A DNA stretch of 63,809 bases, counting the filler, from Choristocarpus tenellus KU-1152 (Eukaryota; Protista; Phaeophyceae), in the NCBI GenBank assembly GCA_964200185.2. It is 11 parts of 11 records of this genome, joined end to end, with 100 filler letters (N's around TTAATTAATTAA, not from the genome) between each part and the next. Parts side by side here need not be neighbours in the genome. Positions count along the whole stretch, not along the records: positions 55,766 to 60,961 come from CAXNAD020011543.1; 10 more parts are not named here. One strand, 5' to 3'. Both the position numbers and the translations under genes were made by a program. Positions 2,760-62,600 of the stretch are shown here, piece by piece (positions within the stretch are counted from its first letter, which is position 1; each line of letters begins with the position of its first letter). The notes under the pieces are model-generated. The model saw only the letters and a program-made list of their open reading frames with translations, was not told where the DNA came from and did not search any database.

Positions 2760-3323
2760 ATCACCGCCCAAACGGTATGTGGGTTAACCTCGGCTCAATA
2801 CTGTTTAAGTCACTTACAGGACACGGTTCTGGTTGAGCATCTTGTAGGACACTGGTTGATGCTTCCAAAGTACCACTGTGAATTGAACCCAATAGCAATG
2901 GTCTGGGGGCGGCCGAAGCACTATGTACAAGGCAACTGTGACTACATGTAGCCTGGAATGAGAGCCAACATTTCTGTCAGTCCTAAGGAGGAAAGGGAGA
3001 TGTTCAGAGTAATTGTGGAGAGGTTCTTCAGGTTGAGCATTGCTTATCACCTGACATATTCCAACGAGAAAGGCATGGAGTGCACCAAATTGGACAAGGT
3101 GTACAAGACATTTAAGTCTCAAATGAGGTTTGCACCTTCAGAATACCTCATTTAACTTGGCATGGATTGTCTGGTTCAGAGGCCTAGTTCCCCATGAGTG
3201 AGCCTTAGCCAGCAGGTGACAACATCGTATAAATGGGAAATAATGGAAAGAGAATGGAGAGACAACAACGCCCATGTTCTCCAGGTGAAGATTACCTCTT
3301 CAGGCGTCAAAATCGTCCTTAAA
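2760..3323 (+). mobile_element. Degenerate IS630/Tc1-mariner (DDE_3-type) transposase C-terminus plus 3' region
   Basis: Peptide LMLPKYHCELNPIAMVWGRPKHYVQGNCDY matches the LPK(F/Y)HCELNPIExxW motif, with the catalytic E changed to A. An in-frame stop follows, then ...VYKTFKSQMR. The 3' part recurs at 43098. Confidence 0.8.
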
Positions 3324-3423
3324 NNNNNNNNNNNNNNNNNNNNNNNNNNNNNNNNNNNNNNNNNNNNTTAATTAATTAANNNNNNNNNNNNNNNNNNNNN
3401 NNNNNNNNNNNNNNNNNNNNNNN
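3324..3423. other. Artificial contig linker N44-TTAATTAATTAA-N44; also at 7524, 10987, 16293, 20192, 31081, 36687, 42998, 55666, 60962
   Basis: Identical 100-bp spacer with stop codons in all six frames, repeated ten times. Confidence 0.97.
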
Positions 3424-3627
3424 ACCTCCTAATGTTGACATCTTTCTCTTTTTTTTGTTGATGTGTGGTACGGTCATGGGGGGGGGGGGCAGAGATTGAA
3501 GTGGAAGGTAGTAGTCATGAAACCCTGTGCATGGGGAAGAGATCATTTCAACATGTGAAGGAAGACTTAGAGGGTGTTGGAGGTGGATTGTCCATGTGCT
3601 GCAGTGTTGACATTGTTTGTGTCTACT

Positions 3628-3901
3628 GATTGAAAGTATCTTAGAGGGTACGGATTTTGTCCTGTTTGTCCATTCGGGGCTTGGCTTCCAATGTTTTTTT
3701 TTATGACATTTTCCAACTCCGAAATGCTTCAGAGTAAAAAAAAATGTGTATGTTGTTAAGAGTGTGTTCGGAACAAGGATATTGAAACTTCCTAACAAAA
3801 ACAACAGTCAAAATTACATCAAAATTACATCAAAATCGCAATGTTGGATTTTGGCCCCCAAACGGACGGACATGACTGTACTCTCTAAGATACTTTGACT
3901 C
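3628..3901 (-). mobile_element. MITE family A, complete copy, TSD TACT
   Basis: TIRs GA(T)TGAAAGTATCTTAGAGGGTA / TACTCTCTAAGATACTTTGACTC; TACT on both flanks. Confidence 0.9.
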
Positions 3902-4354
3902 TACTGCATGTCTCGTGGCAGTCCTGTGTCGGAGGACTCATCTTATCGGCATAACTGGCAACTTCTTTTTTTTTATGTGGTTTTGTGTTGGTTTTTCGTA
4001 TTGAGCACTGAACTTTGTCGTGAAGTGTGCTGCTTGGTGCATAATGAGGACCGTAGGTTTGGTTGTTGCGCAGTTAGTTGGATCACTTGGGTGCTGCTTT
4101 GACTGTTCAAGGCAAATCTTATGGAGAGGGGTGGTGGTAGTATCACAGACGCAGCAGGCAGGGACCAGCTTTCGTAGTCGTGCATGTCTTCTCACCCTGG
4201 GGGTCAACGTAACACGTATTATGATATTAGTTTTCCATCGAAAGAGGCCTACTACTTGATTAAGATGTTGTTGGTCACCTGATCACTCTGCCTTCTCCTT
4301 CCTACCTTGCACTATCTAGTGAATGTACAGGATGTTTCTTCATGAAAGGCAATT

Positions 4355-55665: not shown

Positions 55666-55840
55666 NNNNNNNNNNNNNNNNNNNNNNNNNNNNNNNNNNN
55701 NNNNNNNNNTTAATTAATTAANNNNNNNNNNNNNNNNNNNNNNNNNNNNNNNNNNNNNNNNNNNNTAATTTATTGTTCCATTACTCCATAAATAATTTAC
55801 CGTAACTGTCCGATAGAGTTGGAAGAGTCTAATCGAACAG

Positions 55841-56143
55841 CTATCTCATGGCGCCATCGCGATCATTACTGTGGTGCTGCCGTTCTTGCGTTCTCTCGTC
55901 ACCTTCATCCTGTTCGAAAGGAACCCACTCGTTTTAGCCAACGTGTTTTACCCGTTGCTCTACCTCACCACCCTGCTGCCCATCAAGATCTTTGCCTTGT
56001 TCACGATGAACAACACCGGCTGGGGCACCTCCTCGAGGAAGAAACTCGTGACCAACTACTGCCCAGTCTTGTCGGTGGTGTTGTGGCAGCTCAATTTGCT
56101 CGCAGCACTTGTATGGCACTTCTTTGGGCGTCCTATGCTGTAA
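55841..56143 (+). CDS. HAS: Terminal exon of a class I hyaluronan synthase-like GT2 glycosyltransferase
   Basis: Branch-like CTAAT and CAG acceptor, then LSHGAIAIITVVLPFLRSLVTFILFERNPLVLANVFYPLLYLTTLLPIKIFALFTMNNTGWGTSSRKKLVTNYCPVLSVVLWQLNLLAALVWHFFGRPML*. The WGT gating-loop motif and flanking TM helices are as in the HAS family. Upstream exons lie beyond the contig start. Confidence 0.8.
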   Translation, partial: LSHGAIAIITVVLPFLRSLVTFILFERNPLVLANVFYPLLYLTTLLPIKIFALFTMNNTGWGTSSRKKLVTNYCPVLSVVLWQLNLLAALVWHFFGRPML

Positions 56144-58768
56144 TGTCAGCGACCTCTTTCTTGATACGCCAAGCATGGTGACCCATAATAGAATTTGGTG
56201 TGGTGAGGCTGCAGTGTCGTTGCTGGTGTTCTTGTCGCGCATAATATGAGAGCACCGCGCGCTTTGCGGATGGTGGTATGGCTGGCTCCCTGGCTGCCAA
56301 CCGACTTGGTCGTGTTCTCTTCCCACATCAAGAGACTTCGAGAATAGGGAGGGAAGAGTAGTCGGTGTACCTTTTCTTCGGTTTTCCGGTATCTGGAGGT
56401 ACTAGTGGAGAAGGGTGTCTAATAGGAATATTCTTGTTCAGGTATACCACGTGAGAGGAGTGTGAGGTGTTATTCGTAGCCTCTTCAAACGAATTGTTGC
56501 CGTGACCAAACAAGGATAGATAGTAGTATAAACATGAATGATATATGATGAGAGTTGAAATGTTTCAACAATTGGTTAAACATGGTTTAGAGAGAAGTAT
56601 CTTAGCATTTTTGACAACGTTTGCATTTACAGTAATATATATATATATATATTGTAATATACTTAGAAGTATAGTTTGTTCTTTCCCTGACATATATTCA
56701 AGGTGTTGTGGGGCACAATGATAAATGTAAATCATAGGTCATCCCACTACTCTCGAAACATATTTTATTGAAGCCAACCGAGACGTCCCCAAATCGTACC
56801 TGACTGACCTGCAATATGATGTTATCCAGACAAACACTTGAGCCATGATTACACGAGACACAGAGTATCATTTGAGGTAATAGTTGGTCCTTGTAACCCT
56901 GATCGACGTTCATAAATGATTTAACCGACGTTGAGTTCTTTCATACTAAATTGAAGTGGATTTTCTCGTGCATACTGAAATTTATCCTCTGGTGGGATAC
57001 TTTTTGAAATGAGATCTAAAATCTCACGCTGTGTAGTCCGCGTATATGTGTGCACTCTGTGTGGTTTCTAAAGTGTGTCATATCCACCTCGCTTAGTGAC
57101 AATGATGATTCCTGTTGTTCCCTTGACAGAACCGTGCATGTTGTGTGTGAACCTGTATTGCTTACTTTGCCAGTAGTTCTACTATTGGTATTGTAACTGC
57201 TACTGCTACAAGAAAGGGTAATGATAACAGCAACATCGGCAAGGATGACGAATAATCTGTAGGGTGAGTGTTGTTATGGGGTAGGAAGAGGGAAGTTGTC
57301 TGGTACAAGAACAGCACTCATTTTGAAAAAGATTGATACTTGTTGATGCTTTCTGCATGTCGTCATCATACGTCTCACAACACATATGAAGAAATGTGTG
57401 CAGTAGTGAGTGCAGTAGTTGTACTTAGTGGAGGTAGCGCTGAAGGGATTTGTAAAAGTCAAAGAACTCGCTTCACCTCTGCTGATTACAAAACGAGAAT
57501 GTCAACAACAGGCACTCACAACCCAGCAACAAGGACAACAAGAAGAGGGGCAATACTCAACCTTGCTTTAAACAAATATTTCTACCTCATCTGCATGCCA
57601 GAAAAATCACAACTGCATGCCTGCAGCCACAACAAAAATCTTAGGCACTTCACAAGAACGAGAAGGAAAATATTGAAAAATATTGAACACAAAGAACCAC
57701 CAATAATAGTATTAGGAAGAACACCGTTTGTCACACGAGGGATAGTGGGGGGGGGTTGTCTCGATGTCTAAGATACAACAAACGGATTGTGAATACGTCA
57801 AGTCGATAAGGACAATAACGACATAACAACAACGTATTATCAGGAAGTGATTGTCTGTACCACCATGCCCGAGTACGGTGCCCTTTTGAGCAAGTGTGAA
57901 AGCAGATGGCGCCCTTTTGATATTATGGTTCTTCAAACCGACCACACAAAGACGAAACCTAAAGAGTCGAAAACAAAAAATATTATATTTGGATCGACAA
58001 TACAACATAATTACGATAGTAGTACTACTGATGCGAGCGAATGTGCCCCGCACACCAATAAATAAAGAGGACAATGTAGTAGGTAGTTTTTCGTGTCAAA
58101 CAAGGCACGAATGCGTGAAAGGAATACACATAAAAAAAACGTCACTGTGTACATTGTCCGCACACGACTTCGTATGTAAGCGTTGCCTACGGTTAGAGTT
58201 CCGAAATGAAATTAAGCCATTTTCGATCCGAAATAAACGAGTGGTACGCAGTTTTTGGCCGTTACACATTTCAAGACATATTTTTCCGTTTTTTGCAATT
58301 CCCCCTTATTTCTGTAGTTGAGGCAATAGGATTGACTTGAGAGCATTGATTTCTCTATTGTTTGGAAATTGCCAACAGAATACAGAGAGGTCCTCATACA
58401 CATTTGTGGAAAAAGGTGAATTTTGCACGGGATTGTTGGCATCCTCAAAATGCTACAATGGGTACTTCTCGTTCTCTTTGATCCTTTTTCCGGATGCCCA
58501 GATAGATGTCTTATCTTAGAACCAATGTGTATAGCTGCAGGGGAAGGGGAGAAGTCTGGAAAGAACACCAAGGATAAGGTGGGTTGTGGAGGACAAGGAT
58601 GTTCTGGGAATAATGAACCTCACAGGGAAGCAAAGTGAATAATTGTCCATAGTGAGTGCGGAAATGATATATATATCATATACATATATATATCGTGCAG
58701 GGGTTCCTTTCACAGGATCAAACACTTTTGAAAGAAAATTTTTGTGGATTCCCGGGTTAACAAAAAAA

Positions 58769-59026
58769 GAGTGAAAGTATCTTAGAGGGCACGAGTTTTG
58801 CCTTGTTTTCCGTTTGGGGCTTGGCTTCCCACGGGTTTTAAATGAAATTTTCCTACTCCGAAAAAGTTTGGGAGTAGGCAAAATGTGTATGTTATTGAAA
58901 GGTGTGTCCGAAACAAGGATATTGACACTTCCTAACAAACACTATAGCCAAAATTACATCAAAATCGGAAAATTGAATTCTTGCACCCAGATGGACGTGG
59001 TTCGACCCTCTAAGATACTTCGACTC
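58769..59026 (-). mobile_element. MITE family A, complete copy, TSD AAA(A)
   Basis: GAGTGAAAGTATCTTAGAGGG...ACCCTCTAAGATACTTCGACTC; A-runs on both flanks. Confidence 0.9.
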
Positions 59027-59410
59027 AAAATGGTTTGTGTATATTTGTGTTCGTGTTTGTGTGTGTGTATGCAGATGTGTGAGTTCTTGTTCTACATAGG
59101 TATGGGTGTGACGGTAAAGTGGTACCTTATGGTAGGGGGGGGACAGAGGCCTTTGTAGTTTATTGGTACTGGTCTGTAGAAAAGGTACAATTGTTACAGA
59201 AATAGAACATTTTATGTCACGCTTTATATTGGGCGACTTGATGCGGTTAGACACTATTGAGAGGTATGATGATGAATAACACATCCTGAAATAATCTCTT
59301 GAGGATAAAACGTTGAAATTACATGAAAAGTCAAGAGGTTGAAAGCTTTTGCAGGAAGAATAGTGTATGAAGACTACGCATATGTGCAGTTCATAGTGTA
59401 CCACGGTGTT

Positions 59411-59607
59411 GAGTCAAACCAACTGATAGTAGGTAGGCAGGGTTACATTTTAAAGATATCCAAGTAAAGGGCAAGAATGCGCTGTTTTGTATAGTTGCAG
59501 AAATATACTTTGCTGAATATCATGTCCCTTTGTGTGTTGGGAGAGGGAAGACCAGTTTTGCAATGCAAAGGAGCCCAAACCTGCCTACCTCTCAATTGGT
59601 TTGACTC
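59411..59607 (-). mobile_element. MITE family C, internally deleted copy
   Basis: GAGTCAAACCAACTGATAGTAGGTAGGCAGG...CCTGCCTACCTCTCAATTGGTTTGACTC. Confidence 0.82.
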
Positions 59608-62600
59608 GATGTACACATGTGCGTTAGTGGGTATTGGGGTCCTTGTTTGTGCACGTGTGTGTGTTTGTGTTTGTTAGTGCACAAGTTACGGAAGCGAAAT
59701 TATATGCTTGCATCGATGCATATTTGACGCAGGACATTTTGTTCATAAACGAAACACTTCAAGGGGGGTTCTTTAGTTATGTGGCACATTACTTTGTGGG
59801 TGGTGGTGGTGGTGTTTGGGTTGGCAGACACGTACAGGACGTAGGAACGTTTTGGAGGCTTGACAATGTTGTGGTGTGCGTGTGCACCAACACAAATATG
59901 TTGAAATAAAATAATTTGTTGTTATACGGCAGGACTTAGAGAAAGAGATTTTAGTGCAATCCCACTGAAACATGCTGGATATTGTGTGATAAAGCGGAAG
60001 GATATTATTTAGTTCGAATCTAGTGCTGAAGGAGATGTGTGCGGAGGGGACTGTTCCAAAAATTAGACGAAGATGGTCTTGTGTTACACGTCCAAGAGAG
60101 ATGGCAATGTCATATAGGTCCTACTGTGGTCATGCATATAGCTCCTGATGCTGCTTGGTGTTTTAACCTGGAATTGTGTTAATCGTTGGTTCTCGTGAAG
60201 TGCTCTGTGTAGAGTCTCGAAGTTTTGTTTAAAGCGAAGGGATGACCTAGTGTACTAAAGCACTTGTGGAATTTAATTGGATGCATCCTTGTGATACGCT
60301 CTGTGAAGAGGCTGGATGAATACTGTGAAGTACAGCAATTTTCAGTTCCGCAGTTCAGGATAGTCACGCATGCTCTGAATAGAGACTTGTGGATGTATCA
60401 ACTCTAAATATATCCCATTCAGTTGTATGTCGAGGTACACCTACTGCAGAGTGAATTCGAAGTCAGAAGAAGGGTTAACATCTACAATAAAAACTATAAA
60501 ACAAAATACTAGGGTTGTTTGGTCTATGAGAAAAAAAATAGGAGATTACTCAAGTCCAATTCTTAGTCAACTCGCGTGCTTCACGTACTGATTGAGTTTA
60601 TCTTTACCAAATGGATCAAACTTACTATGACCATGCAGTGTGCAACGGTAGGTTGTGATCATATATCGCGAAGGGTAGTATTCGTGTGATGTGGGATACA
60701 TACTAATTAAACATTTCTAGTGGACGAGTCAACAGTCAAACACTAGTTGATGGTACAGAACTGCATCTACAAATCGTGGAGGAAGTAAGCTAAGTTTTTT
60801 AAGTATAACCATGTAGAGTGCAACGGTGTAAGTTGTGATCATATATCATGCAGATCGGTATACATCCAATGTGGGTTACTTGTACGCTAAGAACAGGGGA
60901 ATCTCAAAATTGAGGAAGGCGCGGGACTATGAGGATGGTTTTTTTGCGAAAACGGTCTTAANNNNNNNNNNNNNNNNNNNNNNNNNNNNNNNNNNNNNNN
61001 NNNNNTTAATTAATTAANNNNNNNNNNNNNNNNNNNNNNNNNNNNNNNNNNNNNNNNNNNNCTTTGTTGCAAACACCATCAAGATATGATTAAGGGAGGA
61101 GGTAGAGGGGGAGATGTAGGGGATGGTAGTAGTTGTCCCCGTTGATGCTCAGTTTCAATATTGAACATTGTTCCCTGTCAAGAAGAAACTGATATGCAGT
61201 AAAATTTATCAGGAACACCTTTGTAGCCTCACAAACATATGAAATGTGCGTGAAATTAACATAGCAATCACCACACTTTCACGTAAGTACTTCCTACTTC
61301 ATGCTAATAACTTGCAAATACTTTCCGTCATAGCAAAGGACATTAATGAGCAATAATGGTATATTGGGGCATGGAAAAACAGGAATTGTAATGTACCATG
61401 GTTAATACTCTCAAGTTTTTATCCCTCGCTTCATTAGAAAGTCAGGCAGCAATCAACCACTGCGTAACACAATATAGGACTTCTCCCACATCCACCCCAT
61501 CTAGCCACTCTCCATACACAGATCCTTCTTATCGAAGAAATGCACAGATGCAGATTGAGAGATGCGAAATGCATCTTGGCGCAATAGGTCAAGAATATCT
61601 GTATATGCTTGATTCACTGCATCCTTTTCACATTACATGTTGTAGACTCTACTGTCCTTTCTTTGGGAAAATGAACACTACGAACTTGGTACAAAACTGG
61701 TCGGGGTCATTCCAGCCAACCTGGCAATTGCCAAGAGAGTTAGGCAATCAGACTGAATGAGTGCACTTGGTGAAACCCTCGGAAATTCACTAACGACTGA
61801 TAAGGAACAATATTGATCGACGGTGTTAGCTCTCCAAAGTTAGCACGATCAATCACCACCTTCCTCGGATAAGGGAGATTAAAAAAGATCATATACCGTG
61901 TTGTGTTTTCAAGGAATGGATATAATCATTGATCACGGGGGTTCACACCTGCGCGTAAACATCCTGGGTGATTGTAGAGCAGTCTCCACTTGCATTACAG
62001 TCCACCATCCCATCCCCAATTGTCACAACAAGTGAGCACCTCCCCGACCAACTCCAAGCGTCACGTCCTGCATGCTGCTCAGATGTAAGGTGGAAGGGTT
62101 GAAAGTTAGATCACGTGTTAACGAGGACACGCCATCACTACCAACACAGAGAAATACTGGGAGATTCCATTTTCCCGAGGTTGAGTCTCATGGCTATCCT
62201 CATGACTCCATGCTCCATGTAAAAAAGAGGGGGAAATCTCTAGCAGATGACCAGAGAGGATACAAATACGGACCTCCTTATTGACGAGAACGCCCCGAGG
62301 ACAAAATCGTCTAACATCCTCTCTATTTCTTAATTAGAATATAAGGATTGAACAACCCTCCTTAAGCCGAATCTCACACCTGCCCTCGTTGGAACAATGC
62401 TGTCGCAGTCACCAACCATGGCGTCAGTATTATGATCGGCCGCATAACCACCCCTACAAAGGGACGGACGCCCCTCGGCGATCTGCGTGGTGAGGACACT
62501 CTGGACCCTCAGTGCGATTTGTCCAGAAGCAAGTTGGAATTCTCCAAGCACTTCCACCTCCTTCTCTTCCCTCGCCCTTTAGAATACCTCCAGCCCACCC

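Follow-up and report, generated by a model that had tools for sequence, protein, structure and literature searches.

Accounts of hyaluronan synthesis generally restrict it to chordates, a few bacteria, chloroviruses and Cryptococcus. In a 2025 paper, chloroviruses are the only viruses, and Owenia the only protostome, with a hyaluronan synthase (HAS). The chlorovirus PBCV-1 enzyme (A98R; CvHAS, PDB 7SP6) is a giant-virus class I HAS and a precedent for hyaluronan production on the host surface by an algal virus. In Xenopus laevis HAS1 (XlHAS1; PDB 8SMM/8SMN/8SMP), the gating loop (residues 485-503) joins interface helix 3 (IFH3) to transmembrane helix 5 (TMH5); W491 is stacked against the Arg of QxxRW and, like T493, touches the UDP alpha-phosphate; R496 extends into an acidic pocket; and the W491A substitution abolishes synthesis (PMC11750622). 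The long WGTSxRK form of this loop is the animal type, whereas the chlorovirus, bacterial and fungal enzymes have WGTR.

For brown algae and their viruses, reviews credit phaeovirus EsV-1 with a 'chitin synthase'. This processive GT2 gene of a brown-alga-integrating virus (ESV class) grouped with division 2 chitin synthases of fungi in an analysis that took HAS as outgroup (Goncalves et al. 2016), and is reported to be silent in Ectocarpus; an Undaria endogenous virus likewise carries a Pfam-labelled chitin synthase. The Phaeoexplorer project found phaeovirus insertions in 67 of 69 brown algal genomes, mostly as fragments and silent. According to its matrix paper, the other GT2 genes have no homologue with an established activity, and the terms 'hyaluron' and 'chitin' are absent from the text of the Phaeoexplorer genome and extracellular-matrix papers and from those genome-paper supplements that were searched.

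Reading frame and boundaries of the Choristocarpus sequence

The window analyzed here is a stretch of 63,809 nucleotides from Choristocarpus tenellus KU-1152, in which 11 parts of 11 genome records are joined end to end. Window positions 55766-60961 are the entire contig CAXNAD020011543.1 (5196 bases) of GCA_964200185.2; assembly GCA_964200185, listed in the Phaeoexplorer preprint under C. tenellus strain KU-2346, is a draft of 27,310 contigs, in which a contig of about 5 kb is normal. An earlier note had read positions 55841-56143 as the intact terminal exon of a spliced HAS-like gene in a 'probably brown algal' genome. The host is indeed a brown alga, and Choristocarpus belongs to Discosporangiales, the earliest-diverging brown algal order. 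We hold with moderate confidence, judging from sequence features, that the segment would be the final coding exon of a spliced class I HAS-like GT2 gene in the nuclear genome of C. tenellus; the remainder of this gene would lie beyond the contig edge, which is 75 bases upstream (Table 1).

Table 1 Features of contig CAXNAD020011543.1 in window coordinates
Feature	Position	Strand	Remarks
5' flank, intron-like	55766..55840	+	GC 0.33, AT-rich; 3 of 3 forward frames closed; reaches contig edge
Candidate branch point CTAAT and acceptor AG	55829-55833 and 55839-55840	+	Consensus match; homology begins at the next base
Putative terminal coding exon, class I HAS-like GT2	55841..56143	+	100 codons plus TAA; GC 0.53, GC3 0.77
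TMH4 equivalent	55841..55912	+	P0003 412-435; AF2 helix 411-435
IFH3 equivalent	55925..56002	+	P0003 440-465; conserved YP..Y..TLLP.K.VA block
Putative gating loop	56003..56065	+	Motif WGTSSRKK at 56021-56044, animal-type long form of WGTSGRK/R
TMH5 equivalent	56066..56113	+	Protein then ends, without TMH6
4.8 kb without recognizable gene	56144..60961	.	No Pfam match in longest ORFs, no Rfam family
MITE-like element	58769..59026	.	21-nt terminal inverted repeats, 90% complementary, 216 nt apart

The reading frame is open from 55817 and closes with TAA at 56141-43. Upstream of it, in-frame stops lie at 55766, 55793 and 55814 (TAG 55814-16), and stops interrupt both other frames as well in these 75 bases. 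The GC content is 0.33 in the flank, 0.53 in the exon and 0.41 in the 4.8 kb downstream, and the sequence directly 5' of the exon reads ...ctaatcgaacAG (55829-55840). A profile of 23 members of the clade described below matched the segment with 122 bits, aligning from the Leu at 55841 over model positions 403-497 of 499 with no indel, and found no family similarity in the flank (55766-55840). The relative P0082 carries the identical LSHGAI at the exon start, and relatives terminate within a few residues of the point where the Choristocarpus frame ends. Homology that extends from the first codon after the AG to the family C-terminus supports the exon start as well as the label 'terminal', which the earlier note had applied. 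The 'branch point and CAG acceptor' of the same note stood in part: an AG lies at the homology boundary, but CTAAT is a consensus match, with its branch-point A at 55832 only 8 nt from the AG, and carries no evidential weight by itself.

Other boundaries were considered. A second donor, CTT/GTATGG (56113/56114), leading to a further exon was rejected because the family stops where this frame stops, so that no donor role need be assumed for GTATGG at 56114. An alternative acceptor at 55815-16 would add the eight residues SWKSLIEQ, which loosely echo the TWWSLL of relatives. It was rejected as the main reading and kept as a possible one, as the profile starts at 55841 with no indel and does not use these residues. 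A database protein, P0001 (95 aa), starts at the ATC codon at window position 55856 (L001:91), 15 nt inside the exon; it is probably a deposited eukaryotic annotation, a 5'-partial model, with a start that is not prokaryote-style. A search of proteins of 70-222 aa for an upstream exon of this gene yielded fragments of other organisms and none from this assembly; the DxD, GDDR and QxxRW motifs, for which the note had proposed to look in upstream exons, were not seen at this locus.

Family membership and predicted fold

The peptide quoted in the earlier note lies in this frame, with GWGTSSRKK at 56018-44 and WGTSSRKK at 56021-44. When it was compared by phmmer with the proteins of the PDB, only HAS chains were matched: XlHAS1 with an E-value of 3.8e-14 and about 60% identity between peptide residues 34-96 and XlHAS1 residues 469-531, and the chlorovirus HAS weakly (E 0.025). 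No chitin or cellulose synthase chain in the PDB was matched by the peptide. The XlHAS1 alignment covers IFH3, the gating loop and TMH5 and places WGTSSRKK (56021-56044) on XlHAS1 491-498, in agreement with the vertebrate HAS context that the earlier note had given around the WGT motif. Among 1.84 billion representative proteins, phmmer found 64 matches, and all the named ones are HAS (amphioxus, paddlefish and mole HAS, and a JGI 'hyaluronan synthase'). The 108-aa peptide alone, which is too short for the purpose, had no match in Pfam-A. The exon retains 12 of the 12 columns that are invariant in the clade and 27 of the 31 that are at least 90% conserved. Its similarity to HAS is real and far beyond chance, and the sequence is that of a HAS-family member in an unexpected lineage.

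The full-length relatives allowed the family to be examined from end to end. In their alignment, DGN..D, TDSDT, GDDR, QQxRW and WGTSxR form invariant or near-invariant columns. P0003 over its full length matched XlHAS1 with an E-value of 5e-91 and CvHAS with 1e-74, and the corresponding values for P0090 of Sphacelaria rigidula were 3e-72 and 1e-68; for neither protein was a chitin or cellulose synthase PDB chain found at E < 1e-3. The AF2 model of P0003 (pLDDT 91.4, pTM 0.91) contains helices 411-435, 440-465 and 487-502 around the WGTSSRKK loop (466-486), with the chain end at residue 509. Compared by Foldseek, it gave a TM score of 0.83 with XlHAS1 and 0.77 with CvHAS, versus about 0.45 with chitin and cellulose synthases. 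The element coordinates in Table 1 were transferred by the alignment offset, residue 1 of the Choristocarpus peptide being P0003 residue 412. The HAS fold, consisting of TMH1-2, the GT-A domain, IFH1-3 and the C-terminal transmembrane helices, is thus seen in the model of the relative P0003 only, and the exon covers TMH4 to TMH5 of it. The exon and all clade members end within about 10 residues after TMH5 and lack TMH6; this separates the clade from vertebrate and chlorovirus HAS. Class I HAS of bacteria are shorter still and have none of the last helices either, and the missing TMH6 therefore does not exclude HAS membership.

That the exon belongs to an ordinary chitin synthase, cellulose synthase or NodC-type gene whose C-terminus happens to resemble HAS is highly improbable. 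Pfam labels the full-length relatives Chitin_synth_2 as well as Glyco_tranf_2_3, and phaeoviruses have been reported to carry a 'chitin synthase', but genuine vertebrate HAS receives the same Pfam labels. The PDB searches and the fold comparison both set HAS apart from chitin and cellulose synthases, as the earlier note had proposed, and the trees described below place the clade with chordate and Owenia HAS. Membership in a non-HAS family is largely refuted.

Beside these likenesses to XlHAS1, which extend to the long form of the gating-loop motif (WGTSSRKK here, WGTSGRK/R in vertebrates), the Choristocarpus clade differs from it in lacking TMH6, in the replacement of the motif Gly by Ser, in the brown algal host and in an intron position that is not vertebrate-like. 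CvHAS, similar in fold and in sequence to the full-length relatives, differs in its short WGTR loop, its six transmembrane helices, its viral lineage and the weakness of its match to the exon. No EsV-1 or Ectocarpus protein is among the best 120 matches of P0003, and the Choristocarpus gene is therefore, as judged from this list of matches, probably different from the EsV-1 'chitin synthase'.

Viral-type and spliced relatives and the proposed origin of the gene

The proteins nearest to the exon are 53-57% identical to it. One set of relatives, the P0003 group, is intronless and consists of proteins of about 490-520 aa that are 59-79% identical to P0003. In the Sphacelaria rigidula assembly, a 15.7-kb contig carries P0085 of this group within a tight array of intronless ORFs, PCNA among them, and P0079 lies on a 121-kb marine metagenome contig that also encodes a protelomerase, a SET domain, an Ulp1-type protease, a lipase and an RNase T. 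These surroundings are a giant-virus context. We infer that the giant-virus lineage is probably phaeovirus-like because insertions of that kind are found in nearly all of the Phaeoexplorer brown algal genomes. Directly upstream of the HAS-like gene on the Sphacelaria viral contig (L004:1536-2156) and on the 121-kb contig (L005:9302-9934) is a minus-strand ORF of about 206-210 aa with no Pfam match, which may represent conserved viral synteny.

Other relatives are spliced, and their exons were analyzed one at a time. P0090 of Sphacelaria, used here as the database gives it, is a 621-aa protein from an annotated multi-exon gene, and it shows that intronized cellular copies exist. Its last intron (AAG/GTGTGG...ACGCAG/A) splits the Arg codon of QQTRW (QQTR/W) about 59 codons upstream of the boundary in Choristocarpus; the metagenome fragment P0005 has the same boundary. 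The P0002 group comprises P0002, P0091, P0092 and P0093, the other three being 68-79% identical to P0002, and has a 320-aa last exon that is preceded at the same place, in the two loci read, by a canonical intron (GTAAGT...AACAG in L003; GTTAGT...GACAG in L056). Loci L056-58 come from kelp-surface metagenomes. The description of the gene as an 'intronized' HAS is thereby borne out for the Sphacelaria gene and the kelp-metagenome group, with their canonical GT..AG introns, but not for the Choristocarpus locus, where no upstream exon was found among proteins of 70-222 aa.

Apart from Choristocarpus, the sole named organism in the clade is Sphacelaria, a brown alga with both a viral and a spliced copy; its proteins are public but unnamed. 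P0090 and P0085 share with the exon the same 29-member clade and the same sequencing project, but they are only 46-54% identical to it. Orthology between the exon and P0090 was considered and rejected on the basis of 46% identity and a different intron position. In two Logan contigs, P0006 and P0007, the invariant Trp of WGT is replaced (LGTSSR and GGTSTR) and other conserved residues are lost; they look like decaying copies, unlike the intact Choristocarpus exon. P0004, a copy in the virus clade, shows an abrupt upstream loss of homology comparable to that in Choristocarpus. HAS-like proteins of fungi and animals show only 33-45% identity and are not part of the clade.

Viral sequences were also searched directly. 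A tblastn search of a phage collection, which contains no giant viruses, and a single-protein scan of viral contigs gave no match. An alignment-based scan of viral contigs (IMG/VR) identified 44 giant-virus loci with HAS-like genes at 26-42% identity; among viruses, HAS-like genes are therefore not confined to chloroviruses. The closest IMG/VR homologue, at L008:5989-7461 (UViG_3300045973_000375, 548 kb, GC 0.22 in the fetched stretch), is 42% identical to P0003 and nearly identical to the JGI protein P0094. In a very fragmented eukaryotic assembly (GCA_013572995.1; L065:1-10312, and L066), P0095 is located in a dense intronless island with a bifunctional DHFR-thymidylate synthase, an ankyrin protein and an EsV_1_7_cys-domain protein, an arrangement that suggests a further insertion of giant-virus DNA with a HAS-like gene in it. 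P0274, a HAS-like catalytic exon of a eukaryote, was found in L052-L055 (L052:1378-1941, 3231-4016; GCA_054404135.1 and three Logan runs). It is 60% identical to the clade profile region and lies about 1.3 kb from split UDP-glucose/GDP-mannose dehydrogenase ORFs on the opposite strand, with which it may form a pair of HAS and UDP-GlcA-supply genes.

Two trees were built, a quick tree of 71 rows (midpoint-rooted) and a careful tree of 39 rows (IQ-TREE, LG+C20, rooted on chordate HAS), and in both the Choristocarpus row consists of 100 residues. A single clade holds the exon together with the viral-type and spliced relatives in both trees (29 members and support 100/99 in the 39-row tree). Within it, the 20 intronless viral-type rows group at 99/99, with the exon outside, and the Sphacelaria-type rows group at 83/94. 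The exon has a long terminal branch (1.05) and joins the P0002 group weakly (81/57), and a tree uniting it with the virus clade was not rejected by the AU test (lnL difference 3.2, p 0.198). The next outgroups are the giant-virus MAG gene of L008 and P0095; beyond them, with moderate support, are Owenia fusiformis and chordate HAS. The annelid Owenia, which in both trees is the sister of the algal and viral lineage with moderate support, and the 'HAS3' proteins of early-diverging fungi show that the HAS family occurs outside chordates. These proteins are 33-38% identical to the relatives; unlike those, they form separate clades, are longer and have no known viral context.

The link to viruses that the earlier note had raised agrees with a sister lineage that is intronless in giant-virus-type contexts and with next outgroups that are also virus-like. 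Given such outgroups, a host that took the gene from a virus is the more parsimonious reading for the sequences compared, in trees that have no true outgroup. The three spliced lineages share no intron position, and that of the Choristocarpus exon is common to no relative; unshared positions fit a gain of introns after capture, once or several times. The gene lineage would thus most likely have been captured from a giant, phaeovirus-like virus and have acquired its introns later.

The AG at the homology boundary and the closed, AT-rich upstream frames favor a spliced host gene; a host gene is also favored by the intact frame with all invariant residues kept despite the long branch, and by the 4.8 kb without a Pfam-matched ORF together with the existence of spliced relatives. 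Against the spliced-gene reading are the unique intron position, the permissive AU test, the failure of the search among 70-222-aa proteins to find an upstream exon, and a GC3 of 0.77 that is nearer to the viral copies (0.68-0.72) than to the 41% GC flank. The same features would suit a truncated relic of an integrated, intronless giant-virus HAS-like gene, of which the 3' fifth survives, unspliced and non-functional, next to a coincidental AG, the rest having gone through a deletion, rearrangement or insertion. We consider such a relic less likely than a spliced gene, but a serious alternative. The phaeovirus insertions of brown algae are mostly silent fragments, the exon resembles the intronless viral clade (up to 57%) as closely as it does any spliced copy, P0004 has a similarly abrupt upstream boundary, and P0006 and P0007 are decayed. 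A relic would, however, have kept its frame intact to the natural stop of the family and preserved every invariant residue along a long branch, its homology would start exactly after an AG, and no other viral gene or ORF would have remained in the adjoining 4.8 kb. By Pfam, no dense intronless ORFs or viral marker genes were found in 56144-60961, in contrast to L004, L005 and L065.

A foreign source of the contig, whether a free virus or a second eukaryote growing with the alga (for example an epiphyte, fungus or protist), is improbable. The contig is only 5.2 kb long in a draft of many contigs, none of its sequence could be connected with a known algal gene, and the spliced P0002-type relatives come from metagenomes. 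No part of the contig resembled human sequence. On the other hand, the only other named organism of the clade is itself a brown alga, with viral and spliced copies, the HAS-like proteins of fungi and animals lie outside the clade, and the gene-poor, intron-like context speaks against a free virus.

Predicted mechanism, possible product and other features of the contig

The exon keeps the W, G, T, S, R and K of the XlHAS1 gating motif. By analogy with the Xenopus enzyme, the loop would reach into the catalytic pocket with its Trp, Thr and Arg, touch the UDP phosphates and the QxxRW Arg, and gate each round of sugar transfer, and TMH4 and TMH5 would line the polymer channel. The most probable product would be a GlcNAc-containing polymer, hyaluronan-like or chitin-like. 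Product specificity is not readable from the sequence, and the polymer could be hyaluronan or a chitin-like GlcNAc polymer.

The well-supported HAS-family clade ties giant-virus genes to intron-bearing brown algal genes. If the enzyme is active, a so far unsuspected GlcNAc-containing polymer would be present on the surfaces of brown algal or virus-infected cells, the gene would be a case of a host intronizing a viral glycan synthase, and the clade would supply new outgroups for the origin of animal HAS. A bolder proposal, which we regard as unlikely, is that early-branching brown algae (Choristocarpus, Sphacelaria) express a virus-derived HAS with an animal-type loop and make a hyaluronan-like polymer, and that giant viruses moved HAS between distant eukaryotes. 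If this were true, a giant-virus HAS lineage beside the HAS of Owenia and chordates would point to viruses as a vehicle of HAS, possibly including the line to animals. Full-length genes, the Sphacelaria P0090 and the viral P0003, are available for expression, which makes the case directly testable.

The MITE-like inverted repeat in the downstream part of the contig (Table 1) is the only one visible there, and the core of its terminal inverted repeats is absent from all other fetched loci. Window positions 60620-60880 contain two diverged direct-repeat copies about 180 nt apart, with a 52-nt core that is 73% identical, each copy being preceded by a similar 'accatg.ag.gtgcaacg' stretch; they are probably a local duplication or a small repeat family.
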